Shown here: in pieces, positions 1 to 51,719 of the stretch
How the letters are laid out: every line of letters starts with the position of its first letter
Position numbering within the stretch: the stretch's first letter is position 1
DNA from: Leucoraja erinacea
Taxonomy: Eukaryota
Reading direction: 5' to 3'
Assembly (NCBI RefSeq): GCF_028641065.1
Contig: NC_073402.1
Span: 15,314,001 to 15,378,000, forward strand
Length of the DNA: 64,000 bases
Made by a program: the position numbers and the translations under genes
The notes under the pieces: model-generated
What the model was told of the DNA's origin: nothing
The model's database searches: none
Seen by the model: only the letters and a program-made list of their open reading frames with translations

Positions 1-239
1 TTCAGTTTCAGCAGTACTTTGCCAAGGGCCTGTTCTGTGATAAACAAGGCCTCTATCCTAAAATGTCAAAGAAGGCATTCTTACACCCACTTGTCATCTA
101 TGTAACAAAGTGTTCTGTTAGCACTCGGCCTGAACTCTTTGCTGTCCTTCCTCGCATTATTAACAGTACAGGATAGGCCTGCCAAACGATCGCTATTTTT
201 TCCAGAACTGCACATTTAAATCGCAAAAGAGAAAAAATA

Positions 240-465
240 GGCTTGCACTTCCTTAGCATCTCTCACGTTTGTTGTAGGATCTCCGAGACTACTTTACAGT
301 TCATCAAGTACCTCTTGAGATATTGCCCCTGTTCAAATATGGTAGCCATTTTGCACTCAGAAAGCTTCCATAATCAGCAATTTAATTGACCAAATAATAT
401 ATTTAAGTGATGCTGATTAATTGAGAGCTGTTGGTCAGGCTACCAGAGATAACTCTCTACTTCAT
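240..465 (-). mobile_element. Old Deu-domain SINE (SacSINE1/AmnSINE1-like) 3' part
   Basis: The reverse complement resembles the DeuSINE central/3' region as I recall it (cctgaccaac...ttatttggtcaatt...ttgctg...aaaatggctacc...gtaaagt). Highly diverged; ends approximate. Confidence 0.45.
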
Positions 466-839
466 TGAGTTAGACTGATCATGGCCTCACTGGCTATCCA
501 ATGATAAATACATATTTTCAGGACACAGGGAACTGTAGACACTGGTGTTCAAAAAGGACACAAAGTGCTGGAGTAACTCGGTGGGAATATGTAGAGAGGT
601 GAAGACAGGTTTAGACAGATCACATTAGAGTTGAATAGTCCATCCACAATCAATAAGGCATAGCTGCTTAAACAAAGCATTCACACCGCAGTAGCCCAGG
701 AAGAAATCGCTGCCTCTAAAAGAGAAGACAAAGGGGTGTAATTTTGGAGGTTAATGACAAAATGGATGTGTTCAAAAGAAACACATCTGAAAAATCCTTG
801 ACCATGGATTTGTGGCAACAAGTGGGTCATGGATGTTCA

Positions 840-936
840 AAGGTACACAAAATTGCTGGAGAAACTCAGCGGGTCCAGCATGCATCTGTGGAGCGAAGGA
901 AGTAGGCGACGTCATGGCCGAAACCCTTCTTCAGAC
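840..936 (-). mobile_element. Penelope-derived short terminal-repeat unit with hammerhead-like core
   Basis: Minus strand reads CTGAAGAAGGGTTTCGG...GATGC...GCTGAGTTTCTCCAGC. Flanked by a 9-bp direct repeat GGATGTTCA (831-839, 937-945). Confidence 0.7.
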
Positions 937-1190
937 GGATGTTCATCTGGGAGCAACAAGAAAGAACCAGACTGAGGACTGCTGATGAACCCTTGAAAAA
1001 GAATAACTTCAACTGTATGACTTAAGGTCAATGGTGAAAAAGAGAAGCAACTACTCATCAACAGGACTCCATGATAAAGAATCTGAAGCAGGATCTTGAA
1101 GACGGAGTGACTCAGCAGGACAGGCAGTATCTCTGGAGAGAAGGAATGGGTGAAGTTTCAGGTCAAGACCCTTCTTCAGACTCAGTCAGG

Positions 1191-1981
1191 CAGGCACTAT
1201 CGCTATCAAAATATGGAGGGGACCGGGGGACAGAGGGGGACACAATTTCTTGGCGGCAGTGCGCGCATGCGCACACTCACACACATGCGCGAGGCTTCGT
1301 TGGCTCAATCCAGCGCTAAATGCAGCTCAACTGCCTGTATCGCCGTGTTAACCTACAGCCCTGCCTGGACTGATGGGACACCAGCGCTGCTTCTCCACGC
1401 TGGCTGTAAGCCTGGGCCATATTTCTCGCAAGTCCAGGCAGGGCTGTAGGTTAACCTGGTGGGACAGGCAGAGTTGAGCTGGGTTTTGCGCTGCTTCTTG
1501 GCACTGGCTGTGGGCCTGGGGGCGCCGCGCCCGTCTGACTCCCGACCTCTCTGGCCACCCGTGGGGGGGGGCACTCGTGTGGGGACGGGACAGCGCTGGA
1601 GAGCCGGTATCTATCCTGACTGTGGATGAGGCACGGGTCTGTGCCGAGTGTGTTTTGGCACGTCCCCTCCTCCAATCACCGCGCTCTATCCTCAGTCCCC
1701 CCCCCCCCCTTCTTCTTCCTCTGACCGACACATCCCTTCCTCCAATGATCGCGCTGAATCATCATGTCCCACTCCCATTGCCTGCTGACCGACGTCCCTG
1801 TCGTCCAATCGGCGCCCTTGATCAGCAGTCCCACCCCCGCTGTCTCACGGAAAGCGGAGATTTCACCGGGTTTTAAAATCCGGATTACAAAAACTTGGGG
1901 GGGGGGGAGTGGGATCGTCCCCCACCTCTCAAAACAGAGGGGGGACATGTCCCCCCTGGCCTCCCCGGGATTTCCACCCTG
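1191..1981. mobile_element. Non-autonomous hAT-like DNA transposon (MITE)
   Basis: Perfect 8-bp TSD CAGTCAGG (1183-1190, 1982-1989); CAGG...CCTG termini; subterminal AGGGGGAC motifs near both ends; GC-rich non-coding interior. It interrupts a Penelope-derived repeat (~1100-1190, continuing after 1990). Confidence 0.75.
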
Positions 1982-2000
1982 CAGTCAGGGAACAGAGTGA

Positions 2001-2148
2001 CTTCTTCTTCTTCTTTTTTCGTGTGGCGTGCACAGCCTAAAGTTGTTGGACAACTTGTTGTTCTATTTGATCTTCCGTTTGTGCACGTCGAGTTGATTGC
2101 ATTAGTCGAAACAGGGTGGACCACGTGAAGGTTGCAATCTTCCACCCC
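2001..2148 (-). mobile_element. Short SINE-like retroelement with a 5' HDV-like ribozyme and (GAA)n tail
   Basis: Minus strand starts GGGGTGG and ends CACGCCACACGAAAAAAGAAGAAGAAGAAG. A second copy lies at 9540-9661. Possible decayed TSD GAACAGAGTGA / GAAGAGAGAGA (9/11 match). Confidence 0.8.
2095..2148 (-). ncRNA. Minimal HDV/CPEB3-like self-cleaving ribozyme (predicted)
   Basis: GGGGUGG-AA-GAUUGCA-ACC-UUCACGU-GGU-CCACCCU-G-UUUCGA-CUAA-UGCAAUC. P1 has 7 bp with a G1-U wobble, P2 7 bp, P3 3 bp; L3 is UUCACGU; P4 is reduced to a UUCG loop; J4/2 is CUAA with the candidate catalytic C. Confidence 0.85.
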
Positions 2149-2539
2149 GAAGAGAGAGACGTAGAGATATGGAAGGGTAAGTTGGCAAAATGACAGACCA
2201 AAGTGGATGATGATCAAGGGAAATGCAAAATGGTTTATTATTAGCTCACTGCAGTATCTCACTGGACTAGATGAAGTATTTATCTCCAAGGGCATTTAAT
2301 TGACAGGAGACCTTGGGGCCAAATTAATATGTAGAGAAGTGAAGACAGGTTTGGACAGATCACAGTTATAGATGGTGCATTGCACATTGAACGATGAATG
2401 TGAGAGAGGTGTGTGGGGATGAGGGAACACCTTCCCTTGTGGTGGACAAACTACTTATGATGTGTTTTAAATATGATTTGCTTTTGGGTATCTATTCTCC
2501 AAAGTAGTATGACCCCTAATTGAATTTTATTTGGCACTA

Positions 2540-2763
2540 TGGGCCTGTCGCACTTAGGCAAATTTTTAGGCGACTACAAGCACTAGTTGTCGCCAGGTTA
2601 ACGTAGATTGTCGCCGGTGCTGACTCCATTTTTCTTTGTTGCTAAAGTAATGATTTCAAAATTTATGTCGAAGTGGGGTCCAGTCGTCGGTTTTTCGGTG
2701 ACCTGCTACGACTATGACAGTCGCTGGCAGTCACCTAAAAATAGCCTAAGTGGGACAGGCCCA
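2540..2763. mobile_element. PIF/Harbinger-like MITE
   Basis: TIR TGGGCCTGTC(G/C)CACTTAGGC ... GCCTAAGTGGGACAGGCCCA; flanks CTA/TTA resemble a TWA target. Confidence 0.7.
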
Positions 2764-4294
2764 TTACTCTTCTCCGATCGGTCTTCAATCCAGAGGCATA
2801 AGATGGTGGTTCTACTGCTCGATTAGAAAAACAAATCTGCTCTATCAAATAGCAATGAAATTTGAAAAGCATTGAGTACCGTAGTGTTTATAAATGCAAC
2901 TCAATAATTTCAGTCAGACAGCAAGGCAACAGTGTGAGAAGGTCCCAGATCCCATCAGTAAATGTAGACTGCAGCTTTGTGATTCATTACGGGTTAAAAT
3001 ATGATACTAGATGTGCTGATGGAAGGGCCCGAATACTTTACCTGTTCTGGCATTGGCAGCTGCTTTCAGACTTGTTCAGACACTCCAGCTGCCATCCTGG
3101 AAAACAATTATTACACTTATGAAGAAGAAATCCAGAGTGAGCAACCCTTAAAATGACAGCTTGGATTATTTCGATGCTTAAAACAGTTTAAAGGGATGGG
3201 AACTTGGGTAGAGATAGAAAAACAGAGCAAGGCTATCAACTCCACAAACTTTCCGACCACACAGTCAGATCGCAGCTGATCTGTATCATAGCTCCAGCCT
3301 AGGGCTGAATTGCCTGTAAAATATGTACAAAATCATTTGCTCCTGTAAACCAGATTCAATCCTGACATTCGGTGCTATCTGTCATTCTCCGTGTGACCAC
3401 ATGGATTTCCACCAGAGTGCTTCGGATTCTTTCCAGTTGGGGAGTGAGTTGGCCACTGTGAATGGCTGCTGGTGGAGTGGGTGATAAAATCTGAAGGAAA
3501 TGCCTATCTTTGGTGTAAACCAACATCTGCAGTTCCTTCCGACAATGCAAGCAGGTGTTTGGTTGTTAGCATGAACTAGATGGGTCGAGCAGCCTATTCC
3601 TGTATTTCATGACTCCTTGGCTCTGTGCAGGAAATGTTGTGGCTACTGTACACATAGCAAACTCCCACAAATGCCTCGTAACATTAAATTCTTCTATCAT
3701 GTCTCCGATGTTCTAGAAAAAAAACCAATCTAAGTTTGCCCAACCTCTCTTTATAGCCAATATACCGTCTTCTGCACCCTTTCCAAAGCCTCCACGGACT
3801 TCCTGTAATGGGGCCACCAGTACTCCAGATGCGGCCTAAGCAAAGTGCCATAAAGCTGTAACGTGACTTCCTGACTCTTCTACACAATGTCCTGACCGAT
3901 AAAGGTAAGCCTAACAAATGCCTTGTTTTCCACTCTATCTACTTGTGATGCTGCTTTCAGGAAGAATTGCCACTTTCAGGTTTAGTCAATTAGCTTTGAG
4001 TCTAAATTTTCATTTCATTTTATTGATTCATTCATTTTATTGAAATATTAAAAGTGTCCTTGAGGATTATTTGATAATAATTGAGTTGCTCGATATTTAT
4101 CCTTCATCCACCATTACTCAAATAGATTATTAGTGCATTATTAATCTATTTTATTTGGTGAATGTAATCGTCTATGAGACATTCAAAAAAATGTAAAAGG
4201 TTCAGAAAGTAATATATAAACATATCTTTCTTTCTTTGCACAATCTCTGCATGTTGCTTCTCCCAAAATGCATAACTATGTTAAACTTCAATGT

Positions 4295-4558
4295 AAGGCA
4301 CAAAAAGCTGGAGTAACTCAGCGGGACAGTCAGCATCTCTGGAGGGAAGGAATGGGTGATGTTTCGGGTTGAGACGTGTCTTCAGACTAAAAGACATGGG
4401 AACGAGAATGCCTTTCCTGTGACTCAGCCTGAAGAAGGGTCTCGACCCAAAACATCACCCACTCCTTCTCGCCAGAGATGCTGCCTGTCCTGCTGAGTTA
4501 CTCCAGCTTTTTGTGTCTATCTCAGTTTAAACAGCATCTGCAGTTCCTTCCTATACAC
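4295..4558. mobile_element. Penelope-derived foldback element (inverted pair of terminal units)
   Basis: Arms ~4296-4388 (-) and ~4425-4558 (+); perfect 14-bp TSD TTAAACTTCAATGT (4281-4294, 4559-4572). Confidence 0.75.
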
Positions 4559-4847
4559 TTAAACTTCAATGTCACGTGACTGCCCATTTCACCAGTGTAT
4601 GTTCTCCAGCTCATCTGTAAACGTCACATGTTTGCTCTTTAGCTCAGTAACATATAACAAATTTTATTTTCAAAAAGGCCACATGCAGTTTACATCATTT
4701 TTATTTGAAGTGAATCCTGCTGCTGAAGATTGTTTTATTGCTGCCTTACAAATATATCTGTGCATTGAAATCATTCATTTCAAGTAGAATGCAAATTCAT
4801 TGACACATGCAAAAAATATTCTTGCAAATTATAGTTAAGAGCTAAAT

Positions 4848-5181
4848 TCATAGGTTATAGGATCAGAATTAGGTTATTTGATCCATCGAGTCTACTCCAC
4901 CATTCAATCATGGCTGATATATCTTTCCCTCTCAATCACATTCTCCTACCTTCTCCCTATAATCCCTGACACTCTCACTAAACAAGAATCTGTCAATCTC
5001 CACCTTAAAAATATCCATTGACTTGTCCCTCTCAGCCGTCGGTGGCAATGAATTCCTCAGATTCACGACCCTCTGACTAAATAAATTCCTTCTCATCTCC
5101 TTTCTAAAGGTACATCCTTTTATTCTGAGGTTATTCCACTCTCCCACTAGTGGAAACATCCTCTCCACATCTACTCTATCA
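4848..5181 (-). mobile_element. CR1 LINE 3' fragment
   Basis: Translates to the CR1 ORF2 C-terminus (FPLVGE..LRIKG..FRKEMRRNLFSQRVVNLRNSLP) plus the 3' UTR. Confidence 0.85.
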
Positions 5182-5979
5182 GTTTATCTAACGGTGTAAC
5201 TATTTAAAATCTGCTATGAAGTTTGTTGCAAATGTTTGGACAGACTCAGATAGGGTATGCTGCAAACTGTACTGCTATATTTAGGAGGATCACGTTGTTA
5301 ATCTTTGACACAAAGACCTTGGTGTTTGTGTTTTGGTTGCAAAAGATATGCCCATGGGTAGAAAAACATTTGAATGGACGAAATGTGCATATTTGGTCAA
5401 AATAATGCAATTGGGATTGATGAGCAGTGAAAGATTAAATTTTGTTCCAACAGGAAATTGCGGGCTGCTCTGAACATTACAACTGTATAACAAAGTGAGA
5501 TATGTACGAGGCCAATGGATGGTGCATGTGATTTTGGGGTGGGTATCATCAGCAATTTTGCCTGCAAAATAATTGTTCCAAGGCTACAATGGAATATTGA
5601 ATTTTCCTGCTGTTTTGTAGTTTCCAAATTGTAATTTTCTCCCACTCTTTGAAATTCAATAACTTTCTCTTGATTATGTAAACACGGCCTCCAGAATCCC
5701 TAAAAGCACACTTTCCAAAAGGGTCATTAGACAGAAAGAAAAACAAGAAACATTAGCTGATGTTTCCCTCATCCAGATGTACTGAGCCTGACTGAAGCTT
5801 TCCCCCAACCCCAACAGCTGTGACCCTGGCTGACATCAACCACAGCACAGTCCAAGGACGTACGTCACACCACCTGTTATGAGTTGTACATCACCTTTGG
5901 AGGTGTTGCATTTCTCTGTCAAAGTATCAGTGCGCTAAGTTTCCACCACACTCCTTTGAATCTTTATTGAACCCCAATT

Positions 5980-6343
5980 CATAAGGTCATAAGTGATAGG
6001 GGAAAAATCAGGCCATTCGGCCCATCAAGTCTACTCCACCATTCAATCATGGCTGATCAATCGTTCCCTTCTAACCCAATTCTCCTGCATTCTCCCCATA
6101 ACCCTGACACCCATACTAATCAAGAATCTATCCATCTCTGTCTTGAAAATATCCACTGATGGCCCGATGGCCTCCTACGGCAAAGAATTCCACAGAATTC
6201 CACAGATTCACCACCCTCTGACTGAAGAAATTCCTCCCCATCTCCTTCCTAAAGGAACATGCTATAATTCTGAAGCTGTGACCTCTGGTCCTAGACTCTC
6301 CCACTATTGGAAACATTCTCTCCACATTCACTCTATCCAAGCC
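5980..6343 (-). mobile_element. CR1 LINE 3' fragment
   Basis: GLDRVNVERMFPIVGESRTRGHSFRI...FFSQRVVNLWNS plus the 3' UTR. Confidence 0.85.
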
Positions 6344-7139
6344 AAGTTCTAACCACACTTTCAATAAAGTGGCTATAATCACGTACAGCATGTCAAACAA
6401 CTTCATAAACGAGCCTGCCGCTCTTGCAATTATTTCCTCTCACGATGCATTCCTATCCTTAATTAGTTTTGCTAGAAACGAGCTCACCTAGAATCATATT
6501 TTTACCCGATGATGGATGAAGAAGCAAATTGCTTCTTATGCTTATTATAAGACCTGTATGTGGATAGCTATTTATTTTAATAAAGTGAGTTATCTTCATC
6601 AGAATTACATGTTCCTCCCTGTGCATTGAGCTACCTATTTGGTCTCAGTTGCTTGGAATGCTTTCAATGAATACTGTGGAATGCATCTTACCGAAGCCTC
6701 CCCAGTGTAGTAGTTTTGATTAATACGAGCAGCAGAAGCCCAAGTGCAGACCCCTATGGAGGAGAAACCCCAAACTATTTATCATTTCTATTTAATTGAT
6801 TAGATTTTTCATTTCGGGCTTCTGTTTTTAATGTGATGTCCTATGGGTAAGGCATAACAATGTAGCATTAGGGATGAAACCTTTCCCTATGTGGAATTAC
6901 ATATTACATGCTATCTGCACACACAAAATCAGGCCAATTGGTCTCCACCACCAAATATAAATTCTTCTTCTTATCTAGTCCACACAGATTGGATTAGCAG
7001 TTGCTCAGCCATAGCTGAACACAATTCTCGGCACCTGCATACAATGGTGTCTGCTTTGTGCTCCTTGTGCGTGGTGGTGAAGATTGGTGAACACAGGGCC
7101 GTGACGCGAACACTCTTTCCTGGACCCCACCAAATATAA

Positions 7140-7482
7140 ATCATTATATATTATTATATTATACAGAAATTACACATAAATTTTGCAAGTCAGTAAAAAG
7201 TAAAATACCGTGCAATAAACGTCATTAGTGCTGAAAAAAACAACAAGTACATGGTAGTGCAAAAGGGGGTGCATAGTGTTCCATTACAGAGGTAGGATTA
7301 GGGTTGTGCAGGTCAGTTCAAGAACCTGATAACTGTAGGAAAGTAGTTATTCTTGAACCTGGTAGTGTGCGATTACAGGCTTCTGTACCTCCTGCCCATA
7401 GGTAACGGCGAGAAGGCGGCTGTTTCATCCCAGATGTTTGGGATCCTTGATTAGAGATGTCGCCTTCTTGAAACAATGCCTG
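7140..7482 (-). mobile_element. Rex1/Babar LINE 3' fragment (old)
   Basis: Similar to the 3' coding end of the element at 39300-40340 (IKDPxHxG...LLPxGRRYRS...RFKNNYFP). Confidence 0.65.
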
Positions 7483-8784
7483 AACCTTCCTGTCCTGTCC
7501 CTACCTCTATTAAATCCAAACTGTGTGGATTTGACATCAAAGCAGAAAATGATGGAAACTGCCAACAGGTTAAGCCATGTCTGTGGAAAGTGATATGGAG
7601 TGAATGTTTCAGTCTGAGACCCTCTGTCTGAAAATTTCATTTTGAAAGTGTCTAAGTTGGCTTGCATTGGTGTCTTAATGTCTTTTAAGGTATTAACCTC
7701 CCATCTGATCCAAACATTCTTAAGATGCCCATCCAGCATTTTTTTAAACATTGAAACATAAGGAATCCTTTCACTTTCAACTGTGAAATGCTACATTTAA
7801 ATATCTTCCATAAGATATAGTAGAGATTGACAGATTCTTCATTAGTAAGGGTGTCAAGGGTTATGGGGAGAGGGCAGGAGAATGGGGTGTGAGGGAAAGA
7901 GATCAGCCACGATTGAATGGCCTAATTCTGCTTATGCGACATATCAGAACATTTATTTTTGTCACAAACCTAAATCACAATGTTAAATCTGACATAAGTT
8001 TATAATCAGGGCACATGAATTCTCCTAGCTTCAGATTGTTCGTTGTATCTCGATTGCCTTGATTAGTGCATGAGACAGTCTTTAGTGTGAAGATTAATGC
8101 ATGAGGCAGTGATCAATGGGATGATTCATGCATGAGGTAGTATACTAGGAAAGTAAAAGGCAGAGCAGCAAATGGGAGGGTACTTACTGAGAGAGAGGGC
8201 AGCCAAGGGCAGCAAAGGCCAGCAGGGCAGGTCCATTTATTTAAGATTTCCCTTTAGTTCCCGAGGAATTAATTCCATGTGAAAGAAACAGATATTGCTT
8301 CATTCATTGCTACTAAACAGATTAATCACAAATTAAATCAAGAGTGTGTAAGAAGAAACTGCAGATGCTGGTTTAAACCAAAGATAGACGCAAAAAGCTG
8401 GAGTAACTCAGCGATACAGACAACATCTCGGGAGAGAAGGAATGGGTGACGTTTCATGATGAGATCCTTCTTCAGAGCATACGTTTAATTCTAATCATGA
8501 TTCTTGAAACTTCAGGTAACCATTTCATAAACGACGATGGATTGCTCTATGGCACTCATTTTGAGGCAATGCAATCCTTTGATGATTTAATCTTGAAGTT
8601 CACAATTTTTTCTCTGTAAAAACATCAAATAGCAGAACAAGCACTGACCTGTTGCAGACATTCTGATCAGAATGTGAATGGTGGTAATAATAATAAATGA
8701 CTACATGTTTCAGTCAGGATATGTACTCTGACACTGACACCGTTTATGTCAAATGTCACGGGTGCTAACTTGGGATTTTTATGT

Positions 8785-9233
8785 CATAGAGTCATAGAGT
8801 GATACAGTGTGGAAACAGGCCCTTTGGCCGAACTTGCCCACACTGGCCAACCAGCCCCAGCTACACTAGTCCCACCTGCCTGCGCTTGGTCCATATTCCT
8901 CCAAACCGGTCCTATCCATGTACCTGTCTAACTGTTTCCTAAAAGTTGGGATAGTCCCAGCCTCAACGACCTCCTGTGACAGCTTGTTCCATACACCCAG
9001 CACCCTTAGTGTGAAAAGGTTCTCCTTCAGATTCCTATTACATCTTTTCTCCTCCACCTTGAACCTACAGTATGTCCTCTGGTCCACAATTCCCCTACTC
9101 TGGACAAGAGATTCAGTGCGTCTACCCGATCTATTCCTCTCATGATTTTATACACCTCTATAAGGTCACGCCTCACCCTCCTGCTCCCCAAGGAATAGAG
9201 ACCCAGCCTACTCAACCTCTCCCTGTAGCCCAC
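8785..9233 (-). mobile_element. CR1 LINE 3' fragment (second subfamily)
   Basis: YRERLSRLGLYSLG.RR.R.DLIEVYKIMRGIDRVD...GVWNKL; (CTCTATGA)n-type tail. Confidence 0.85.
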
Positions 9234-9539
9234 ATGTAAGAAATCACATAAACATTTCTGAAGCGCAAAACGCTGGCCTTGATCTTGGAAAAAACTGTAA
9301 AGGAGAGAAAATCAAAAAACGTCTCACACCTTAACTGTTAACACTGTTTCCCTCTCTGCAGCCTAACCTGCTAAGTGTTCCCGTCAATTTCTGTTTGGAT
9401 ATTGGTAAAGCAGAGAAATTGATTGGAAGTAGATTTTTGAAATCACGAAGGAAGACAGTAAAATACATGGAGCTGGCCAAGGAGTTTGAAAGAAAGTCTA
9501 GAGTAATCCTGTAATGGGGTTTGCTACTATTTAGAGAGG

Positions 9540-9661
9540 CTTCTTCTTCTTCTTCTTCTTGCGTATGGCGTGCACAGCCTAAAGTTGTAGGACAACTTGT
9601 TCTATTTGATATTATTTGATTGTGCGCTATTCGTCGAAACAGGGCGGACCACATGAAGGTT
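9540..9661 (-). mobile_element. Second, 5'-truncated copy of the HDV-ribozyme element
   Basis: Shares the 3' body (GGCGTGCACAGCCTAAAGTTGT..GGACAACTTGT) and (GAA)n tail with 2001-2148. Retains ACC-UUCAUGU-GGU-CCGCCCU-G-UUUCGA-CGAA but has lost the P1/P2 5' strands. Confidence 0.8.
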
Positions 9662-10753
9662 CCATATAAGATAATTGAGAGCAAGAGTAAACTACCTCAA
9701 TTGGACAGAGTTTGCCATTAAAAAATAAGTACCAATATTAATGTGGGACTTCATATAAATGAGAAAGGAGGCTGTGTGGCGTTTTAAATTAGGTGTACTA
9801 TGAGAAGTTCTGAAGGCTGGTTGAAGGAAAGCTGGAGACCATTCACAATCTACTAGAGATTGTGTAAAGTTGTATCTGTAGCCCAGTCTGTCACACAGAT
9901 CAGACTTCCCACCATTGATCCATCGACACTACATGCTGCCTCGGGAAAGCAGCCAACATAATCAAGGACACTTTTTACCTTGGCCATTCGCTCTTCTTAT
10001 TTCTCCCCTCGGGGCAAAAGATACAAACGCTTGAAATCAAGTAGCACCACTCAGGAACAACTTCTTCCCATCTGTTATCTGAACAGAGGGGACACAGCTC
10101 CTTCATGCTCGCATGTAGTCCTGATTCTCCACACTAGCTCATTGCAGACTTCTGGAACTAATGGTGTAACCTATATTCTACACTCTACTATTTTTCTCTT
10201 TCCACTTCCTGTGTTCTTGCATCAGCTTGATTGTACTCATGTGCAGTGCGATCTGATTCAATGCAACCTAAATGGCAAATATTGCAAGTTATATTAAGGA
10301 AGGAACACAATGGACGTTAACACATTCTAATAGTATATATTGCATTGATAGTACAATGAAGGTAGGGAAAGACATATACTGATTGTATTTGCTCCCTGAA
10401 TATTATGAATAAAGTATAATTTAAAAATATAAGGAATAGAAAATGCAGTTATGTTCAGAGCTAAGCAGCCCCCAGCTATTCACTTAAAATTCTATCATTC
10501 CATCATATCTCGCTGAGAATAATGGTGAATCATAACGGATTTAACAAGAAGAAGTTACGAAAAAAACCTAATCCGTAGTTATGATTAGGCCTTGCTCCAA
10601 GGACTCCAGGGATCCCGATTTGATTCAGACCGTAGGACCTACCAGTGTGGAGTTAGTATTTGCTTTGTGTGGATTTCCTCTGATTGCTCTGGTTTACTCC
10701 CATAATCCCAAAAGGCCACTATGTTACCCTGATGTAGGTAAGAGGCAAGTAGG

Positions 10754-10906
10754 TATATCAGCCACTTGGTTTGATGTGCAGTTAGGAGAGAAAATCAAAA
10801 AAGCGTCTCACACCTGAACTGTTAACACTGTTTGCCTTTCTGCAGCCTAACCTGCTAAGTGTTCCCGTCAATTTCTGTTTGGATATCAAACCAAGTGGCT
10901 GATATA
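10754..10906. repeat. 22-bp inverted repeat enclosing a ~100-bp copy of 9301-9402
   Basis: Arms TATATCAGCCACTTGGTTTGAT (10754-10775) and ATCAAACCAAGTGGCTGATATA (10885-10906); 10784-10886 is near-identical to 9301-9402. Confidence 0.85.
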
Positions 10907-11994
10907 GAATAGTGTGCAGGGCTACAAGGCAAAAAAGATGAGGGGGAGGGAGAGTAATGGAATTGCTCTGCTGGGAAGCAAGACAAGATGAGACAAGTGA
11001 GTTTATTGTAATGTGGCCCAGGTTGGACAATGAAATTCTTGCATTGCAGCATAGATCAGATGGGCTGAATGGTCTCCTTTAGAAATACAACAAGTATGGC
11101 AAAAGTACACATAGAAAGTTAATGAACTTGCAATGCTTTCAGTTAATGAGCATGGTGGCCGATTGAGAGTACTGGATACAGAGAAGTCTCTGGACCTCGA
11201 CAACATTTACCACATGATTTGCAGCAGCCAACGACAAGGGGCAAGTATGATCTTCTCAGATTCCTGTTTAAATATAATATTGTTTTTGCCAGGTTTAACA
11301 AAAGAACATTTAAAACTGTACACCGTACTTGGAAGATGGTTTTTCTTAATTGCAAAGTTGAAAGAAAAGATTCAATCAAAAATTCATGTTTTGCGTTAAT
11401 CAGTTCATCTTCCGTCCATTAATGTGACAAAAATATGGTCATGAAGAGGCTAAAGCAACAGCAACAGCAACAATAACTCTGAGGAAAGTCTGTATTTTTA
11501 TTGATTTATTTTTCTTGGTGAAAGAGTGAGTTCTTGATATGCAGAAGTTCATTCCTGTATATCCATATAAATCAACATAGCTTGGCACCAAGTGCAGAAA
11601 GCAAAGCCAAGAATCAGAGCTAATCCGAATCTGGACAGATCAGCCAGGCTCTGATGGTTCAGCCAAGAATGATGTCGTTTCCCTCAAAGAAACATTGAGG
11701 ACTGAGCATTTTCCAATAAAAGCATTGTAAAGCAAAACAGACACGCTGCCTTCAACTGCTGCCTTGCAGACATTTTGATTACATTGGCCATTCCAAAACA
11801 TCTGTGAGCTTTTCTAAGTGACTGCCGTAAGAAAGTAATAATGTGTAAATCCAACAGTACACTAATATGGTCATGCTTCTTGAATCATATCTTTTGGCTC
11901 ACATCGCCAATTTTGGGTACGAGTCCATTAGAGTACGCATTGACACAACACAATGAGGTGGAAACCCCAGGTGAATGAAAAGGAATAACAGTAA

Positions 11995-12295
11995 TGCCCC
12001 TGTCCCACTTAGGAAACCTGAACGGAAACCTCTGGAGACTTTGTGCCCCAACCAAGGTTTCCGTGCGGTTCCCGGAGGTTCCCAAAGGTTTTTACCGGGT
12101 CAGTCCTCCCGGCGGCGAAATACCTGTTTCCGACAATACCTGCAACCTCATCAGGATGGGCAACGCACCTGCAACCTCCGGATGAACCCGTAACGGAACA
12201 GGAGTTGGGGAGGGAAGGACTGGGAGACGCGCTAAAGTCTCTTACTGCACAGTCTTTCCGTTCAGTGTTTGGTCATCACTAGTGGGACAGGGGGG
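11995..12295. mobile_element. PIF/Harbinger-like MITE (rearranged)
   Basis: TAA|TGCCCCTGTCCCACT ... AGTGGGACAGGGG inverted termini, the same TIR core as 2540-2763. Confidence 0.6.
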
Positions 12296-19361: not shown

Positions 19362-20364
19362 AATTGAATTGAATTGAATTGAATTCCTTTATTGTCATTC
19401 AGACCTTACGGTCTGAACGAAATTTCGTGCCTGCAGTCATACATACAATGATACAATAATAAACAACAATAAACACAAATTAACATCCACCACAGTGAGT
19501 CGTCCAAACACCTCCTCACTGTGGTGGAGGCAAAAATCTTAGGGCTGCAGTCTCTTCCCTCTGCTCCCTCTGCGCTGAGGCGATTCCCCACCGGGCGATG
19601 GTATAAACAGTCCCGCAGCTCACCGAACCCCGCGAACGGGCCGGTTCAAACACTGTGGCCCGGGGTGGTCGAAGCCGTCGCACCTCCAGTCCAGCACACG
19701 CAGCCGCCGGCCCGCGGCTGAACCCAGGACTCTGGACACCGCCGCCAGAACGTCGTCCCAGCCACCGGAGCACCGTCCCAGCCCCCGGACCGGATCGCCC
19801 TCACGTGAGTACCGTTCCACCCTCAGGCTGGGCCACTCCAGCGGGAGTGCCGTTCCTCCCTCGGGCTGGGCCACTCCGACGGGAGTGCCGTTCCTCCCTC
19901 GGGCTGGGCCACTCCAGCGGGTGTGCCGTTCCTCCCTCGGGCTGGGCCACTCCAGCGGGAGTGCCGTTCCTCCCTCGGGCTGGGCCACTCCAGCGGGTGT
20001 GCCATTCCTCCCTCGGGCTGGGCCACTCCAGCCCCTCACCAGGCCGCTCTCACGGGAGCACCGTTCCATCCCGGGCTGGGCCGGGAGCGAGCCCAGGACG
20101 AGTCCTGTCAGCTGCCCCCAGAGACCCGAGGTCGCCGGCTCCGCTAGGCCTCAGCGTAGACGGAGGCAAAGAAGGGGGATACGACAAAAACGTCGTATTC
20201 CCCCGAAGGGAGTGACAGCAGCCCCCGTTTCACCCCCCACCCCACATAAACACAGCATAAAAACCAAAAACATAACTAGACAAAACGAAAAAAAACAACA
20301 CAAATAGTAAAAGACAAACGGACTGCAGGCGAGCCGCAGCCGTTCCCAGCGCCGCCACTTCCGG
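19362..20364 (-). mobile_element. Non-autonomous retroelement with a Rex1-type 3' end
   Basis: Minus strand begins CCGGAAGTGGCGGCG and ends GAAATTTCGTT...ATGACAATAAAGG(AATTC)n, like the Rex1 3' end at 34581-34630. No RT motifs. Confidence 0.65.
19810..20031. repeat. 38-bp GC-rich minisatellite (~6 units)
   Basis: Unit GGGCTGGGCCACTCCAGCGGGAGTGCCGTTCCTCCCTC, tandemly repeated inside the element above. Confidence 0.95.
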
Positions 20365-25586: not shown

Positions 25587-28232
25587 CTTGGTGACTTCAA
25601 TATTCACATGGGCTCCCCCACCTGCAAGCTCGCATCTGAATTCGCCTTTTTCCTGGACAACTTCTCTCTCACTCAGCACGTCACCTTTCCCACCCATGAC
25701 AAAGGTCACATCCTTGACCTGGTCTGCTCCACAAATCAACCGGTACTCGACCTCCATCCTTGCCTCTTCCCCCTCTCTGATCATAAGCTTATACGGTTCA
25801 CCATCCCTTCTCCGACACCTCGCCCCCGCTTCCTCTGAGAAATCATCTTCCGTAATCTAAAATCCATTGATCCCCACCATCTCTCTGACCTCCTCTCCAC
25901 CACTCTCCCCCTGGACTCAACCCCCATCTCACCTGATGATCTCACAAACCATCTCAACTCCACCTTGTCTACCTCCCTCAACACTCTGGCCCCCCTCAAA
26001 ACAAGAACCGTAACTTTCAACACATCTTCACCCTGGTACACACCTGCACTTCGTAAACTGAAACAGATTGGTCGCCAACTCGAACGACTTACAAAGAAAT
26101 CATCTCTCACAGGCCACCTTGAAGCTTACAAACTCCACCTCACTGACTACAAAGATGCTCTCATTGCTGCAAAATCTGCCTACCTCTCCTCCATATTCAC
26201 CGATCCCTGCCTAAACCACAGAACCCTCTTCTCCACAGTGGGCAACCTCCTCAAGCCTCGAGTCAACACTCTCCCTACCTCTACTCCGGATCTCTGCAAC
26301 TCATTCCTCCACTTTTTCGCTGATAAAATCCGCACCATCTATCAATCTTTATCCCCTGTACTCGACTCCCCAGCATCTACTCCACCAACTACCAAGGCTC
26401 CTCCTTTCAACATCTCCACTGACCTCCTTACCCCTCCTCCACACTGCTTCCTCTCCCAGTTTGACCTGGTCACCCCTATTGAAATCTCCAAACTCATCAG
26501 CTCTTCCAAACCCACTACCTGCGCCCTCGACCCTCTCCCCACTCCCCTGCTGAAGTCCTGCCTCCCCGTTCTCTGCCCCTACCTCACTAATCTCTTCCTC
26601 CTCATTGTCCCAAGGAATTGTCCCCTCCGCTTTCAAAACTGCTGCTGTTACACCAATCTTAAAGAAACCTGGTCTTGATCCCTCCTCTCTCATTAACTAC
26701 CGCCCAATCTCAAACCTCCCCTTTCTTTCAAAAACCCTGGAGCGTATCGTTGCGTCGCAACTTCATTCCCACCTCCTTGCGTATAACCTACTTGAACCCC
26801 TCCAATCTGGCTTTCGCCCCCTCCATAGCACAGAAACTGCTCTCCTCAAAGTCCTCAACGACCTCCTCACCTCTGCTGACACTGGTTCCCTCAACATCCT
26901 CATCCTCCTCGACCTGAGCGCAGCCTTCGATACAGTGAACCATAACATCCTGCTCACCAGACTCAAAGACCTCGGCATTGAAGGCTCTGCACTCAGCTGG
27001 CTCCGTTCCTACCTTTCCAACAGATCCCACTTCATCTCTCTCCACAACCACACCTCTGCTACAGCCACAGTCACTCAAGGCGTTCCCCAAGGCTCCGTAC
27101 TCGGCCCCCTCCTCTTCATCATCTACATCCTCCCCCTTGGTCAGATACTCCGCCACTTCAATCTGGACTTCCACTGTTACGCTGATGACACCCAGATCTA
27201 CCTCGGCACCAAATCCCCCCACAACCCCCCCCTCTCCCATATCAACTCCTGTTTGTCAGCTATAAAAACCTGGATGCAACATAATTTCCTCAAACTCAAC
27301 AGCGATAAGACAGAATTCCTCCTCATAGGCTCCAAAGCCACACTCAGCAAAATCAATAACCCCACTCTCACCATCGACAGCACCACTGTCTCCCCATCTC
27401 CCCAGGCCCGCAACCTTGGCGTGATCTTTGATTCCACCCTCTCCCTTGAGCCTCACATCCGCCATGTCATTAAAACCTCCTTCTTTCATCTCCACAACAT
27501 CGCCAAACTCAGACCCTCTCTCACACCTCCCGCTGCTGAAAGACTCATCCATGCCTTCATCTCCTCCCGACTGGACTATTGCAACTCACTTCTCCTTGGC
27601 ATCAGCTCCACCTACATCAACCCACTCCAACTGGTCCAGAACGCAGCCGCCCGACTCATCACCCACACCAAATCCTGGCATCACATCGCTCCAGTCCTCA
27701 AACAACTTCACTGGCTTCCCATCTCCCACCGGATCACCTAAAAAATCCTGGTCCTCACCTACAAAGCCCTCCACCATCTGGGCTCCCCATATCTCACTGA
27801 CCTCCTCTCCCCCTACCAACCCTCACGGTCCCTCAGATCCACATCAGCTGGTTTCCTCTCCATCCACAAGTCCTACCTCCGCAGTTTTGGGGACAGAGCC
27901 TTCTCCAGGGCAGCTCCCAGGCTCTGGAACTCCCTCCCCCAACTGATCCACAATTCCGTGTCCCTCACCATCTTCCAGTCCCGCCTCAAGACCCATCTCT
28001 TCACCTCTGCCTATCCTTAGCCCCACGTGCCGTCCCTTTTCATCTGTGCATTAATTGCCTCATACTGTGTTTTGTATTGAATTCTGTATTTACTTTGTGT
28101 ACTAGTCATGTCTCTACTATTTATTTCATTCCCCTTACATGTTTTTCCTCTACCTGCTAAATTTTTGTAAGGTGTCCTTGAGACTCTTGAAAGGCGCCCA
28201 TAAATAAAATTGATTATTATTATTATTATTAT
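25587..28232 (+). mobile_element. L2-clade LINE, 5'-truncated within the APE endonuclease, young
   Basis: LGDFNIH, PTHDKGHILDL and LSDH endonuclease motifs; RT motifs [50 protein letters not shown] few stops and a frameshift (~25836, ~26600, 27739). AATAAA and (ATT)n tail. Confidence 0.95.
26605..27741 (+). pseudogene. L2 ORF2 reverse transcriptase domain (disrupted)
   Basis: 378-aa open segment containing all RT motifs, bounded by a frameshift and a premature stop. Confidence 0.92.
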
Positions 28233-34580: not shown

Positions 34581-37110
34581 CATGAATGAATGAATCTCTT
34601 TATTGTCATTGCACATGGTACAACGAAATTTAAAAGTCAACGGTGCGATTCACAAGAGCAATTTTAAATATATAAGAAAAGGTAAAAATATATACATATT
34701 AAAAAAAAATTACAGATAAATAACAATAGCAGCTGAGGTAGAACCATTCAGTTGAATGTGAGTGTTATTTCTTATTTTGCATTGTTAAGTTCACGTATGG
34801 CTATAGGGTAGAAGCTGTCTCTGAGTCTGTTTGTGCGAGTTTTGGAAGACCTGTACCGTCTGCCAGAGGGCAGCAGGTTGTGCCCAGGGTGGGAAGTGTC
34901 CTTCAGGATGTTGGCTGCCCTACCAAGGCAGCGAGAGCTGAAGATGTCCTTCAGGGAGGGCTGTGGGCAGCCAGTGATATTATGTGCGGTGTTGATGACC
35001 CTTTGAAGGGCTCTCCTGTCTGCTGCAGAGCAGCTGGCATACCATGCGGTTATACAGTATGCCAGCACACTCTCGATGGAGCAGCGGTAGAAGGACACCA
35101 GCAGCTTCTCCTCCAGGTTGTTTTTCCTGAGGATCCTCAGGAAGTAGAGTCGCTGCTGAGCCTTCTTGACTGCTGTGGTGGTGTTTGTAGTCCAGGAGAG
35201 ATCCTCCGTAATTTGTGTGTCCAGGAATCTGTAGTCTGAGACCCTTTCCACACAGTCCCCATTGATGAATAGGGGTTTGGGGGCTGCACTGTTCTTACGG
35301 AGGTCTATGATAATTTCCTTTGTTTTTGTGGTGTTTAGGATGAGGTTGTTGTCTGAACACCAAGCTGCCAGTATTTGGACTTCATCCCTGTAGGCTGTCT
35401 CATCTCTTCCTGAGATACGTCCAACCACAGTTGTGTCGTCCGCAAACTTGACGATGGTGTTGGTGGAGTGGGCGGGGGCACAACCGTGGGTGTAGAGGGC
35501 GTAGAGGAGGGGGCTCAACACACAGCCCTGTGGGGAGCCGGTGCTGAGCGTGATGGGGATGGAGAGGTGATGGCCCAGTCTGACGGTCTGGGGGTGGTTA
35601 GATAGAAAGTCCTTGATCCAGAGGCAGATGGGTTGGGAGAGTCCTAAATCCATGAGTTTGCTGGGGATGATGGTATTGAAGGCGGAGCTAAAGTGAATGA
35701 AAAGCATCCTCACATAGCTCCCCTGGTGTTTGAGGTGAGTCAGTGCAGTGTGAAGAGCAGTGGCGATGGCATCCTCAGTGGACCTATTTGCTCTGTAGGC
35801 AAACTGGTGTGGATCGAAGGTGGGCGGGAGGCTGGCTTTGATGTGCTGCTGGACCAGCCTCTCGAAACACTTCATGATGACTGGTGTGAGAGCGACTGGT
35901 CGGTAGTCAATCAGGCCGCTGATAACAGGCTTTTTTGGTAGTGGGATGATTGTGGCAGACTTCAGGCACGGTGGGATGATGGATTGGGACAGGGACAGGT
36001 TGAAGATTTTCGTGAAGACCTCGGAGAGCTGGTCTGCACATTCCTTCAGAACCCTTCCTGTCACGCCATCCGGGCCGGCAGCCTTCCTCGGGTTCACCGC
36101 CCTGAGCACCCGCCTCACTTCATGCTCCTGCACAGTGAGGGTGTAGTTGTTGTTGTTAGGGGCTGGTGGGAGAATGGTGACGAGCTCTTCTGGTTCTGCC
36201 TCGAAGCGAGCAAAGAAACAGTTCAGCTCCTCTGCCAGTGAGGCGTCGCCGTCGGCCGTCGTGCTGTTGCTGGGCTTGTAGTTGGTGATGTGTTGGATAC
36301 CCTGCCACACCCGCCGTGGATCGTTATTGTTAAAGTGGTCCTCTATCTTCCTCTTGTGGGCCGCTTTGGCATCCCTGATGCCTTTCTTCAGGTTGGCTCT
36401 AGCAGCGCTGTACAGGGCTCTGTCGCCAGACCTGAAGGTGGTGTTGCGGTCCTTGAGGAGAGTTTGGACCTCTTTTGTCATCCACGGCTTCTGGTTGGGG
36501 TACACCCGGATGAGTTTGTCGACGGTGACGTTGTCAACACAGTTCTGGATGTAAAAGAGTACCGTGGATGTGTACTCCTCCAAGTCCTGATTTCCAAAAA
36601 TGTCCCAGTTTGTCCTTTCAAAGCAGTCCTGTAGCTGTGAGGAAGCTCCTTCAGGCCAAGTTTTAACAGTCCTGGTGGTGGGTTGAGCTTTTCTCCTGAG
36701 GGGGGTGTATGCTGGTGCTAAGTGAATGGATAGGTGATCCGACTGGCCTAAGTGTGGTAGTGGTGTGGCTCTAAACCCCTTCTTGATGTTTGAGTAGGCC
36801 TTGTCTAACGTATTTTCTCCCCTGGTGCACATTTGATGTGTTGTTCAAACTTGGGGAGAACTGATTTTAAGTCTGCGTGATTGAAATCACCAGCTATGAT
36901 ATGGGCTGCTTTGGGGTAGATGTTCTCTTGTTTGCTGATAGTGCTATGGAGGTAGCCTAGGGCTATGCTAGCATTAGCATCCGGTGGGATATACACAGCT
37001 GTAACTATGACCACGGTAAACTCACGTGGAAGGTAGAAAGGCCTGCATCTAACTATCAGGTATTCCAACTCAGCAGAACAGTGTCTGTCTATGATTGTGG
37101 TATTTGTTAA
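34581..37110 (-). mobile_element. Rex1/Babar LINE (part of EN, RT, 3' UTR)
   Basis: CRPFYLPREF, VYIPP, IAGDFNHA and LGQSDH endonuclease motifs; [32 protein letters not shown] and KFADD RT motifs; AATAAA plus (ATTC)n tail at ~34581-34605. Confidence 0.93.
34772..36832 (-). pseudogene. Rex1/Babar EN-RT ORF (686-aa open segment, frameshifted from the upstream EN)
   Basis: ORF track; small in-frame deletions and a D>H change in MLFI(D)FSSAF. Confidence 0.9.
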
Positions 37111-38948
37111 AAGAAAGAGATTAGTTAAAACAAATGTAGGTCCCTTGCAGTCAGAAACAGGTGAGTTGATCATGGGGAACAAGGATATGGCGGACCAATT
37201 GAATAGCTACTTTGGTTCCGTCTTCACTAAAGAAGACATAAATAATTTGCCGGAAATAGCAGGGGACCGCGGGTCAAAGGAGTTGGAGGAATTGAGTGAA
37301 ATCCAGGTTAGCCGGGAAGTGGTGTTGGGTAAATTGAATGGATTAAAGGCCGATAAATCCCCAGGGCCAGATAGGCTGCATCCCAGAGTACTTAAGGAAG
37401 TAGCTCCAGAAATAGTGGATGCATTAGTAATAATCTTTCAAAACTCTTTAGATTCTGGAGTAGTTCCTGAAGATTGGCGGGTAGCAAACGTAACCCCACT
37501 TTTTAAGAAGGGAGGGAGAGAGAAAATGGGAAATTACAGACCAGTTAGTCTAACATCGGTAGTGGGGAAACTGCTAGAGTCAGTTATTAAAGATAGGATA
37601 GCAGCACATTTGGAAAGTGGTGAAATCATTGGACAAAGTCAGCATGGATTTACGAAAGGTAAATCTTGTCTGACGAATCTTATAGAATTTTTCGAGGATG
37701 TAACTAGTAGCGTGGATAGGGGAGAACCAGTGGATATGGTGTATCTGGACTTCCAGAAGGCTTTCGACAAGGTCCCACATAAGAGATTAGTATACAAACT
37801 TAAAGCACAAGGCATTGGGGGTTCAGTATTGATGTGGATAGAGAACTGGCTGGCAAACAGGAAGCAAAGAGTAGGAGTAAACAGGTCCTTTTCACAATGG
37901 CAGGCAGTGACTAGTGGGGTACCGCAAGGCTCAGTGCTGGGACCCCAGCTATTTACAATATATATTAATGATCTGGATGAGGGAATTGAAGGCAATATCT
38001 CCAAGTTTGCGGATGACACTAAGCTGGGGGGCAGTGTTAGCTGTGAGGAGGATGCTAGGAGACTGCAAGGTGACTTGGATAGGCTGGGTGAGTGGGCAAA
38101 TGTTTGGCAGATGCAGTATAATGTGGATAAATGTGAGGTTATCCATTTTGGTGGCAAAAACGGGAAAGCAGACTATTATCTAAATGGTGGCCGATTGGGA
38201 AAGGGGGAGATGCAGCGAGACCTAGGTGTCATGGTACACCAGTCATTGAAGGTAGGCATGCAGGTGCAGCAGGCAGTAAAGAAAGCAAATGGTATGTTAG
38301 CTTTCATTGCAAAAGGATTTGAGTATAGAAGCAGGGAGGTTCTACTGCAGTTGTACAGGGCCTTGGTGAGACCACACCCTGGAGTATTGCGTACAGTTTT
38401 GGTCTCCAAATCTGAGGAAGGACATTATTGCCATAGAGGGAGTGCAGAGACGGTTCACCAGACTGATTCCTGGGATGTCAGGACTGTCTTATGAAGAAAG
38501 ACTGGATAGACTTGGTTTATACTCTCTAGAATTTAGAAGATTGAGAGGGGATCTTATAGAAACTTACAAAATTCTTAAGGGGTTGGACAGGCTAGATGCA
38601 GGAAGATTGTTCCCGATGTTAGGGAAGTCCAGGACAAGGGGTCACAGCTTAAGGATAAAGGGGGAAATCCTTTAAAACCGAGATGAGAAGAACTTTTTTC
38701 ACGCAGAGAGTGGTGAATCTCTGGAACTCTCTGCCACAGAGGGTAGTTGAGGCCACTTCATTGGCTATATTTAAGAGGGAGTTAGATGTGGCCCTTGTGG
38801 CTAAGGGGATCAGGGGGTATGGAGAGAAGGCAGGTACGGGATACTGAGTTGGATGATCAGCCATGATCATATTGAATGGCGGTGCAGGCTCGAAGGGCCG
38901 AATGGCCTACTCCTGCACCTAATTTCTATGTTTCTATGTTTCTATGTT
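37105..38948 (+). mobile_element. Young CR1 LINE, 5'-truncated, nested in Rex1
   Basis: [41 protein letters not shown]; +1 frameshift at RPH(L)EY near 38378; (TTTCTATG)n tail. Confidence 0.96.
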
Positions 38949-39296: not shown

Positions 39297-40342
39297 GATT
39301 CTAGTTCAAGAGAGTTTATTGTCATGTGTCCCTGATAGGACAATGAAAATCTTGCTTTGCTTCAGCACAACAGAATATAGTAGGCATTGACTACAAAACA
39401 GATCAGTGTGTCCATATACCATTACATACGTAAATACACACATGAATAAATAAACTGATAAAGTGCAAATGACAGATAATGGGCTATTAATGTTCAGAGT
39501 TTTGTCCGAACCAAGTTTAATATCCTGATGGCTGTGGGGAAGTAGCTATTCCTGAACCTGGTTGTTGCAGTCTTCAGGCTCCTGTACCTTCTACCTGAAG
39601 GTAGCAGGGAGATGAGTGTGTGGCCAGGATGGTGTGGGTCCTTGATGATATTGCCAGCCTTTTTGAGGCAGCGCCAGTGATAGATCGCCTCGATGGAAGG
39701 GAGGTCAGAGCCGATGATGGACTGGGCAGTGTTTACTACTTTTTGTAGTCTTTTCCTCTCCAGGGCGCTTTGCCGAACTAAGCCACAATGCAACCAGTCA
39801 GCATGCTCTCTATTGTGCACCTGTAGAAGTTAGAGAGAGTCCTCCTTGGCAAACCGACTCTCCGTAATCTTCTCAGGAAGTAGAGGCACTGATGTGCTTT
39901 CTTAATAAATGCATCAATGTTCTCGGACCAGGAAAGATCTTCAGAGATGTGCACGCTCAAGAATTTGAAGCTCTTGACCCTTTCAATCATCGACCCGTTG
40001 ATATAAACAGGACTGTGGGTCCCCGTCCTACTCCTTCCAAAGTCCACAATCAGTTCCTTGGTTTTGCTGGTGTTGAGGGCCAGGTTATTGCGCTGGCACC
40101 ATATGGACAGTCGCTTGATCTCTCTTCTATACTCTGACTCAACCCCATCAGTGATACGTCCCACAACAGTTGTGTCGTCAGTGAGCTTGATGATGGAGTT
40201 CGCACTATGACCGGCTACGCAGTCATGAGTATAGAGTGAGTACAGCAGGGGGCTGAGCACGCAACCTTGAGGTGCTCCCGTGCTGATTGTTATCGAGTCT
40301 GGCACATTTCCACCAATACGAACAGACTGTGGTCTGTGAACG
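39297..40342 (-). mobile_element. Rex1/Babar LINE, 5'-truncated
   Basis: [44 protein letters not shown]; 3' UTR with AATAAA. Confidence 0.9.
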
Positions 40343-44372: not shown

Positions 44373-45462
44373 GCTAATGGAATTGGGGCTCAACACCTCC
44401 CTGTGTGCCTGGGTCCTAGACTTTCTCACCGCCAGGCCCCAGGTAGTCAAGATGGGAGGGAATACATCGGAGTCCCTCACCCTGAGCACAGGATCGCCCC
44501 AGGGTTGCGTCCTCAGCCCCCTATTGTACTCCCTGTACACACATGACTGTGTGGCTAGGTTCAGCTCCAATTCAATAATTAAGGTTGCTGATGACACTGT
44601 GGTGGTGGGCCTGATCTCAGACAACGATGAGAAGGCCTACCGGGAGGAGGTGGCTGGTCTAGCACTCTGGTGCCAGGATAACAGCCTCCTCTTGAACATC
44701 AAAAAAATGAACGAGCTGATCATGGACTTTAGGAGGGCACATCATCCGAGGACGTACACTCCATTGAGGATAAATGGGGATCCTGTGGATAGGGTGAACT
44801 GTTTTAAATATCTGGGAGTCCACATCTCCGAGGATATGACATGGGCATCACACGCCTCAGCACTCGTGAGTAAGGCAAGGCAGCGCCTTTACCACCTCAG
44901 GCAATTGAGGAAATTCAGAGTGTCTCCGAGGATCCTCCAGTGCTTCTACGCAGCGGCGGTGGAAAGCATCTTGTCCGGGAACATTACCATCTGGTTTGGG
45001 AATTGCTCTGCCAAGGACAAGAAGGCTCTGCAGAGAGTAGTGCGTTCGGCCGAACGCACTATGGGAACTTCACTCACCCCCCTGCAGGAACTATACAACA
45101 GGAGGTGCAACTCCAGAGCAAACAAAATCATGAGAGACCCCTTCCACCCCTGCAACGGACTGTTCCAGCTGCTACGGTCAGGCAAACGCCATGCGGTGAG
45201 AACGGAGAGGTTGAGAAGGAGTTTCTTCCCAGAGGCAATTCGGACTGTAAACGCCTATCTCACCAGGGACTAACTCTACAGAACGTTTTTCCTTCCATTA
45301 TTTATTATGTAAAAGAATATGTGTGTTATGATTGTGTTTATAATTTGTTTGGTTGTTTTGTTGTTTGTCTTTTGCACAAAAGTCCGCGAGCATTGCCACT
45401 TTCATTTCACTGCACATCTCGTATGTGTATGTGACAAATAAACTTGACTTGACTTGACTTGA
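44373..45462 (+). mobile_element. Rex1/Babar LINE, 5'-truncated, with an open 298-aa RT C-half
   Basis: [34 protein letters not shown]; AATAAA(CTTGA)n tail. Confidence 0.92.
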
Positions 45463-50300: not shown

Positions 50301-50482
50301 GACTACGTGAAGAACCCCGCCAGGACGCATGCGTGTCATATCGCTACACGCATTGCGAAACAGTCAGGTGGGGTGGAACGACGTTCCCCCGCAGCGGCAA
50401 GTTTAAAAGCCGGGACCTGCAGGTAAGAGATACTCTGCGGTCTTTTGTGTTGTTCCCATACTGTTTTACAGGTGGGGAGTCA

Positions 50483-51711: not shown

Positions 51712-51719
51712 AAATACCT

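Follow-up and report, generated by a model that had tools for sequence, protein, structure and literature searches.

A dispersed retroposon beginning at the predicted cleavage site of a minimal HDV-like ribozyme fold in a vertebrate-type genome

Introduction

Short non-autonomous retroposons which combine a 5' self-cleaving ribozyme with the 3' end of a LINE are already known, among them the R2 SIDEs and R2/R1 hybrid SIDEs of Drosophila (Eickbush and Eickbush 2012, PMC3414825). These are short elements without an ORF and not of the pol III type, in which a 5' HDV-like ribozyme is fused to the 3' end of a non-LTR element; they are mobilised in trans with the target-site duplication of their partner (the R2/R1 hybrids using the R1 machinery), and the ribozyme frees their 5' end from a cotranscript. 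SIDEs are found only in 28S rDNA sites, are rare (a few to tens of copies) and carry large R2-type ribozymes. In trypanosomatids, NARTc, RIME and SIDER are dispersed non-autonomous derivatives that keep the 5' HDV-like ribozyme (Pr77) of L1Tc, an Ingi-clade LINE, and spread with it (PMC3185411, PMC4035085, PMC5786205); in these protist elements the 77-nt head doubles as an internal promoter. Bipartite non-autonomous LINEs, in which the 5' and 3' ends are retained and the coding part is deleted, are described for RTE, Ingi, Vingi and R2, and the retention of their true 5' ends has been linked to 5' self-cleaving ribozymes (Kojima 2018, PMC5786205).

Two further groups are relevant to the fold itself. 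Minimal HDV-like ribozymes from metagenomes, and theta ribozymes of gut phages, have the double-pseudoknot core with the P4 domain missing, their origin and function being called largely undetermined (PMC10879173). The mammalian CPEB3 ribozyme (Rfam RF00622) is a single conserved intronic locus with a full P4, for which an NMR study describes a U20-G25 wobble, C22 in P1.1, a P1.1 of one G-C plus one U-U pair, and a 4-nt J4/2 holding the active cytosine (PMC4836649).

Here we examine an element lying on the minus strand near the start of a 64,000-nt stretch of Leucoraja erinacea DNA (contig NC_073402.1, positions 15,314,001 to 15,378,000), referred to below as the window, all coordinates being those of the window. 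An earlier note, made from the sequence alone, had claimed that a 54-nt minimal HDV/CPEB3-like ribozyme starts at the first base of a 148-nt SINE-like element lacking a tRNA, 5S or 7SL head, and had inferred a promoter-less non-autonomous element which frees its 5' end by self-cleavage and borrows its reverse transcriptase from a LINE, possibly of the Ingi/Vingi type, in a family not known to the note's author as described.

Results

Fold at the 5' end of the element

The observation made in the earlier note is correct: the minus strand from 2148 down to 2095 reads as given there, and every pair was confirmed by script. P1 (2142-2148 with 2113-2119, positions 1-7/30-36, GGGGUGG/CCACCCU) has 7/7 pairs and starts with a wobble between G1 (2148) and U36 (2113), J1/2 (AA) lies at 2140-2141, P2 (2133-2139 with 2095-2101, positions 10-16/48-54) has 7/7 Watson-Crick pairs, and P3 (2130-2132 with 2120-2122, positions 17-19/27-29, ACC/GGU) has 3/3. 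The L3 loop, UUCACGU, lies at 2123-2129, and C22 pairs with G37 (2112) as a one-pair P1.1 in which U21 faces U38. The strand order is that of the HDV nested double pseudoknot. P4 is absent, a 6-nt linker (UUUCGA, 2106-2111) standing in its place as in the described minimal variants, so that its absence does not exclude the fold. The linker is followed by the 4-nt J4/2 (CUAA, 2102-2105), which opens with C44 (2105), the candidate catalytic cytosine by position only.

A structure-only descriptor was used as a chance control, requiring G1, P1 of 7 bp, J1/2 of 0-5 nt, P2 of 6-8 bp, P3 of 3 Watson-Crick bp, L3 of 7-8 nt with C at position 3, G after P1', 3-60 nt, then C-N-A-A and P2'. It found this one site in the window (in two registers of P2) and none in 272 random 64-kb first-order Markov replicas searched on both strands, although it was written after the site had been seen and is therefore not blind.

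No Rfam family reached its gathering score anywhere in the window. In E-value mode, HDV-F-prausnitzii (RF02682, 17.5 bits against a gathering score of 44) and HDV_ribozyme (RF00094, 16.4 bits against 50) align end to end at 2095-2148 and 2093-2150, respectively, skipping only P4. Scores far below the cut-offs are expected for a P4-less form, and these matches support the placement but not membership of either family. The CPEB3 model gave no match here at E-values up to 10, even though the numbering is that of CPEB3 through position 37, the L3 loop is letter for letter that of the Rfam CPEB3 consensus line, and U20 and G25 in L3 and the P1.1 plan are as described for the CPEB3 RNA. Other Rfam hits at 1900-1966, including Guanidine-II and miRNA families, are sub-threshold matches to a GC-rich palindrome and were rejected. 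Nested-only folding energy is ordinary (z = -0.39), which says little for a pseudoknot; with a 42-nt native leader, P1 still forms in both the MFE and centroid folds.

Body, tail and absence of a pol III head

The element, hereafter copy A, runs from 2002 to 2148 (147 nt, or 148 if G2001 is counted, as in the earlier note). The body of 81 nt (2014-2094) ends in A6, and the microsatellite tail is (GAA)4 (2002-2013). The two ends of the body form an 8-bp closing stem (2080-2087 with 2027-2034) just after the ribozyme fold and 13 nt before the tail, present in both the MFE and centroid folds (z = -1.83, 11 of 200 shuffles folding as well). The only ORF across the element, a 136-aa frame at 1885-2295, matches no family and is a read-through of repeat and flank. 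ARAGORN found no tRNA in 1-12000, which, together with the Rfam result, agrees with the absence of a head derived from tRNA, 5S, 7SL or snRNA. A scan for sigma-70 promoters and terminators was set aside as irrelevant to a eukaryote.

Copy A is flanked by a putative target-site duplication, the 5' copy of which (GTCTCTCTCTTC, 2149-2160) abuts G1, while the 3' copy (GTCACTCTGTTC, 1990-2001) directly follows the tail; the two match at 10 of 12 positions.

Abundance and the 5' boundary

Logan contigs of four public runs, three probably DNA (X1, X3 and X12, from three organisms) and one guessed to be RNA (X15), were compared with positions 1700-2600 at 80% likeness or more. On this whole 901-nt stretch, flank repeats included, 13,332, 13,755 and 12,240 contigs were placed for X1, X3 and X12, respectively, and 557 for X15. 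In the DNA runs summed depth is 0.4-2.5 million over 2010-2133, against 22-33 in the unique flank 2258-2319; this is not a copy number, but as an order of magnitude it means 10^4-10^5 genome equivalents. The largest classes of loose ends listed lie exactly at 2148, with 285, 279 and 299 contigs in the three DNA runs and 37 in X15, and the sequences running on beyond this base are unrelated to one another (agreement 0.35-0.38). Of 32 pieces examined, a further 39,916 lying outside this subset, 4 end at 2148 and none bridges 2148/2149. The 3' boundary scatters over 2005-2010, inside the tail. If X15 is indeed RNA, its 37 contigs running on upstream of G1 indicate that uncleaved or read-through forms exist, though contigs cannot show where transcripts start.

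Depth is 2-3 times higher over the P3-L3-P1' core (2103-2133) than over the body, the core therefore being either better conserved or shared by more subfamilies. Copy A differs from the family majority at 2023, 2047 and 2117. Only the last of these lies inside the ribozyme among the differences examined (these do not include 26 further variable places, so the rest of the ribozyme can not be called invariant): it changes A32 to G, accounts for 58-61% of depth in the DNA runs and 92% in X15, and keeps a wobble with U5. No empty site was seen in the three DNA runs, and given the differences from the majority the insertion of copy A is not recent.

The flanks are themselves repeated. The 5' flank 2165-2226 has depths of 86,569 and 6,093 in X1, with a consensus differing from the window at 2182, 2185, 2186 and 2198, and the 3' flank 1738-1947 has a depth of roughly 30,000-70,000. 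We read this as an older repeat split by copy A, but no other copy of it lies in the window and a minor subfamily with an upstream extension is not excluded.

Further copies and a second family

A blastn search within the window identified a second member of the family, copy B (9541-9664, minus strand; aligned at 9543-9664), which is 78% identical (E = 9e-27) to positions 13-148 of copy A. It lacks the 5' strand of P1, P2 and P2' and is therefore 5'-truncated and internally deleted, but it keeps P3-L3-P3'-P1' (L3 UUCAUGU, P1' CCGCCCU, J4/2 CGAA), the 3' half of the body and a (GAA)6 tail. One further copy was found by searching a protein collection with the translated element, as a spurious ORF in an ENA contig (P0001, 87% identical over the element), this being the only sequence recovered in two such searches. 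Its seven residues before the G1 codon are unrelated to the window's flank. Copy B and P0001 both carry G32, and P0001 still encodes U5.

A looser descriptor returned mostly noise but pointed to 7128, where a 167-nt element (copy C, 6962-7128, minus strand) with an unrelated body and a (GAA)3 tail (6962-6970) represents a second family. Its head (7075-7128) has the same plan, with P1 GGGGUC/GGCCCU (6/6, also opening with G1-U), P3 GUG/CAC (3/3, every letter differing from copy A), L3 UUCGCGU (one change), G, a 6-nt linker (UGUUCA) and CCAA; P2, however, has only 4 contiguous pairs, against 7/7 in copy A. The CPEB3 model RF00622 matches 7095-7128 over model positions 13-46 with 17.0 bits (E = 0.014), below its gathering score of 35. 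Copy C is flanked by a perfect 12-13-nt duplication (ATTTATATTTGGT, 5' copy at 7129-7141, 3' copy at 6950-6962) which abuts its G1, the boundary being ambiguous by 0-2 nt because GG follows both copies. The body of copy C closes with a 7-bp stem, so that in both families the base just after the ribozyme fold is joined to the region 10-13 nt before the tail.

A MAFFT alignment of copies A, B and C misaligned the L3 of copy C, and helices were therefore compared by script. A covariance model built from copy A alone gave 90.3 bits for copy A, 16.0 for copy B (E = 0.016) and 10.1 for copy C; the other 20 of its 23 matches are noise, the two that were read (45869-45915 and 2676-2722) having neither the L3 core nor the tail. 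Scans of viral contigs with the core and tail patterns returned no hits, as did a scan of genome contigs. A scan of metagenome contigs with a core pattern returned 17 loci, none of which has the 3-bp P3 or the fold around the match, making these chance matches. None of the RT-bearing LINE fragments in the window shares the tail, and a search with an RT ORF placed it only as Eukaryota, often Chordata.

Discussion

Copy A is most likely one copy of a very abundant, ORF-less, bipartite non-autonomous retroposon of the SIDE type whose minimal HDV-like ribozyme defines its own 5' end. In this view a copy lying inside any host or neighbouring transcript is transcribed by read-through, the head folds into the nested double pseudoknot and cuts 5' of G1, and the resulting RNA, whose first base is G1, is copied through target-primed reverse transcription by a LINE reverse transcriptase that recognises the 3' module and tail, giving the 12-13-bp target-site duplications and occasional 5' truncation typical of that process. 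Because the cDNA would run to G1, each full-length daughter copy would carry the whole ribozyme again. The analysis itself shows the pairing, the family boundary at G1, the abundance, the duplications and a truncated copy, whereas read-through transcription, self-cleavage (from the fold and the boundary), the catalytic role of C2105, the body as a LINE 3'-UTR-like recognition module and mobilisation by a LINE partner are inferred.

The interpretation offered in the earlier note is partly supported. Its predictions concerning abundance, copies ending at G1 rather than continuing 5' of it, duplications abutting G1, placement by HDV models (below threshold) and retention of stem pairing all came out in its favour. 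The best evidence for covariation is that two families with different stem letters keep the same architecture and nearly the same unpaired core, each at a 5' end defined by a target-site duplication, although this rests on two families plus one listed variant and the weak P2 of copy C counts against it. The Ingi/Vingi attribution remains a conjecture, and the suggestion that the family was undescribed is too strong for the kind of element. Our literature searches found no paper on this vertebrate family, but did not cover supplementary material, the Vingi paper (PMC3002237) or Ruminski 2011 (PMC3308841), and the supplementary ribozyme lists of the 2009-2011 genome searches might already contain fish or shark hits.

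Compared with the R2 SIDEs, this element is dispersed rather than bound to rDNA, very abundant, ends in (GAA)n and has a 54-nt P4-less head with a CPEB3-type L3. Compared with the trypanosomatid elements it lies in a genome of vertebrate type and no promoter role is known for its head. Where the P4-less ribozymes of microbiome and phage DNA are concerned, the minimal form has here a clear eukaryotic context, the first base of a retroposon. In contrast with the single CPEB3 locus, thousands of retroposon heads lacking P4 are present, none of the matches found reaching the gathering score of that family.

Among alternative explanations, the one that survives best, though unlikely, is that the head is a conserved structured 5' module but not a working ribozyme, the uniform 5' end arising from transcription initiation, for instance at an internal pol III-type promoter, and the fold serving RNA stability or binding of the reverse transcriptase. 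A precise 5' end shared by thousands of copies is also what an internal promoter gives, the 6-nt linker and its neighbours in copies A and C loosely resemble a pol III B box, and the R2 protein is reported to bind a pseudoknot in its 5' ribozyme region (PMC6765202). However, there is no tRNA, 5S, 7SL or snRNA match, we saw no A-box-like partner or T-run terminator, the tail is (GAA)n, and a promoter does not explain why the family boundary coincides to the base with the predicted scission site in two families whose stems differ.

It is also possible, but improbable, that the ribozyme once worked in a master LINE or SIDE and that copy A and most others are dead relics in which the fold is merely inherited. 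Copy A is not young, as its differences from the majority and the 2 mismatches in its duplication show, no empty site was seen, and copies B and C are damaged or weak in P2. On the other hand, all 17 helix pairs and the core letters of copy A are intact, so nothing in its sequence predicts inactivity, and this reading concerns the copy rather than the family mechanism and is compatible with our main explanation. Chance resemblance of an ordinary short retroposon or LINE fragment is the least likely, since, despite the sub-threshold Rfam scores, the ordinary nested folding energy, the descriptor written after the fact and a rough estimate (about 8e-9 per position) that a genome of this size should hold tens of chance fits, no random replica was hit, the fit sits at the exact 5' boundary of the family, L3 is identical to the CPEB3 consensus, the core is the most deeply covered part of the element, and a second family with other stem letters repeats the plan at its own duplication-defined 5' end.

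A more far-reaching reading, which we regard as tentative, is that stripped-down HDV-type ribozymes with the CPEB3-type core are active in a cartilaginous-fish-like vertebrate genome as the 5' processing device of retroposons numbering in the tens of thousands. The "mammal-only" CPEB3 ribozyme would then be a domesticated head of such a retroposon or of its LINE partner, and P4-less minimal HDV-like ribozymes would have a eukaryotic mobile-element source.

If the head cleaves, it would be a natural P4-less HDV-like ribozyme with a clear job in a eukaryote; the origin and function of such minimal variants are said to remain to be determined (PMC10879173). The link drawn between 5' ribozymes and bipartite non-autonomous LINEs (PMC5786205) would be extended, and should the partner prove to be Vingi-like, this touches a clade now used for gene-writing tools that need its 5' and 3' UTRs (PMC13708176). 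The CPEB3-type core, with its L3 and P1.1 plan, would exist outside mammals in a mobile element, and one vertebrate-type genome would carry on the order of 10^4-10^5 near-minimal ribozyme copies inside introns and transcripts, with possible effects on host RNA processing.

Other elements in the window

A second family of retroposons headed by a predicted ribozyme is represented at 6962-7128 (-), flanked by a perfect 12-13-nt target-site duplication (7129-7141 / 6950-6962), with an unrelated 113-nt body, a (GAA)3 tail and a head that matches Rfam CPEB3_ribozyme at 17 bits, which is below threshold. At 9541-9664 (-) lies a 5'-truncated, internally deleted copy of the same family as the principal element, with a (GAA)6 tail and an L3 in which the CpG is changed to TpG. 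In both families the body forms a closing stem, of 8 bp in the principal element (2027-2034 / 2080-2087 (-)) and of 7 bp in the second family (within 6971-7074 (-)), joining the base after the predicted ribozyme to the region just before the tail. A pseudoknot-like arrangement of 5-bp and 6-bp crossing helices was also picked up at 2676-2722 (+) by our own model, at 9.2 bits, but it has no L3 core and no tail nearby and is therefore probably due to chance.

Both flanks of copy A, the principal copy of the element, are themselves high-copy repeats (2149-2226 and 1738-1977), with a summed depth of about 6,000-86,000 against 33 in unique DNA, and they may constitute one older element split by the insertion. 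The stretch 1938-1957 is a GC-rich palindrome that draws sub-threshold Rfam hits (Guanidine-II, miRNAs).

Five LINE fragments with RVT_1 were found in the window, at 34772-36832 (-), 37091-38494 (+), 44377-45273 (+), 26605-27741 (+) and 39778-40305 (-), three of them also with the ALKBH8_N-like C-terminal motif, and none of the five shares the 3' end of the element. The interval 26001-28000, over an RT-bearing fragment, shows a strong negative GC skew (-0.547) and the highest GC (0.525) of the window. ORFs at 50333-52595 (+) gave weak tyrosine-recombinase (Phage_integrase) and Dam-like methyltransferase matches, consistent with a DIRS-type element, while 19782-20047 holds a tandem array with a 38-nt period (5 overlapping 114-nt copies, 74-86% alike).

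A copy of the element, 87% identical when translated, was also found in a public metagenome assembly (protein P0001, from an ENA contig of 8,483 nt), and host DNA of this or a related animal is therefore present in that sample.
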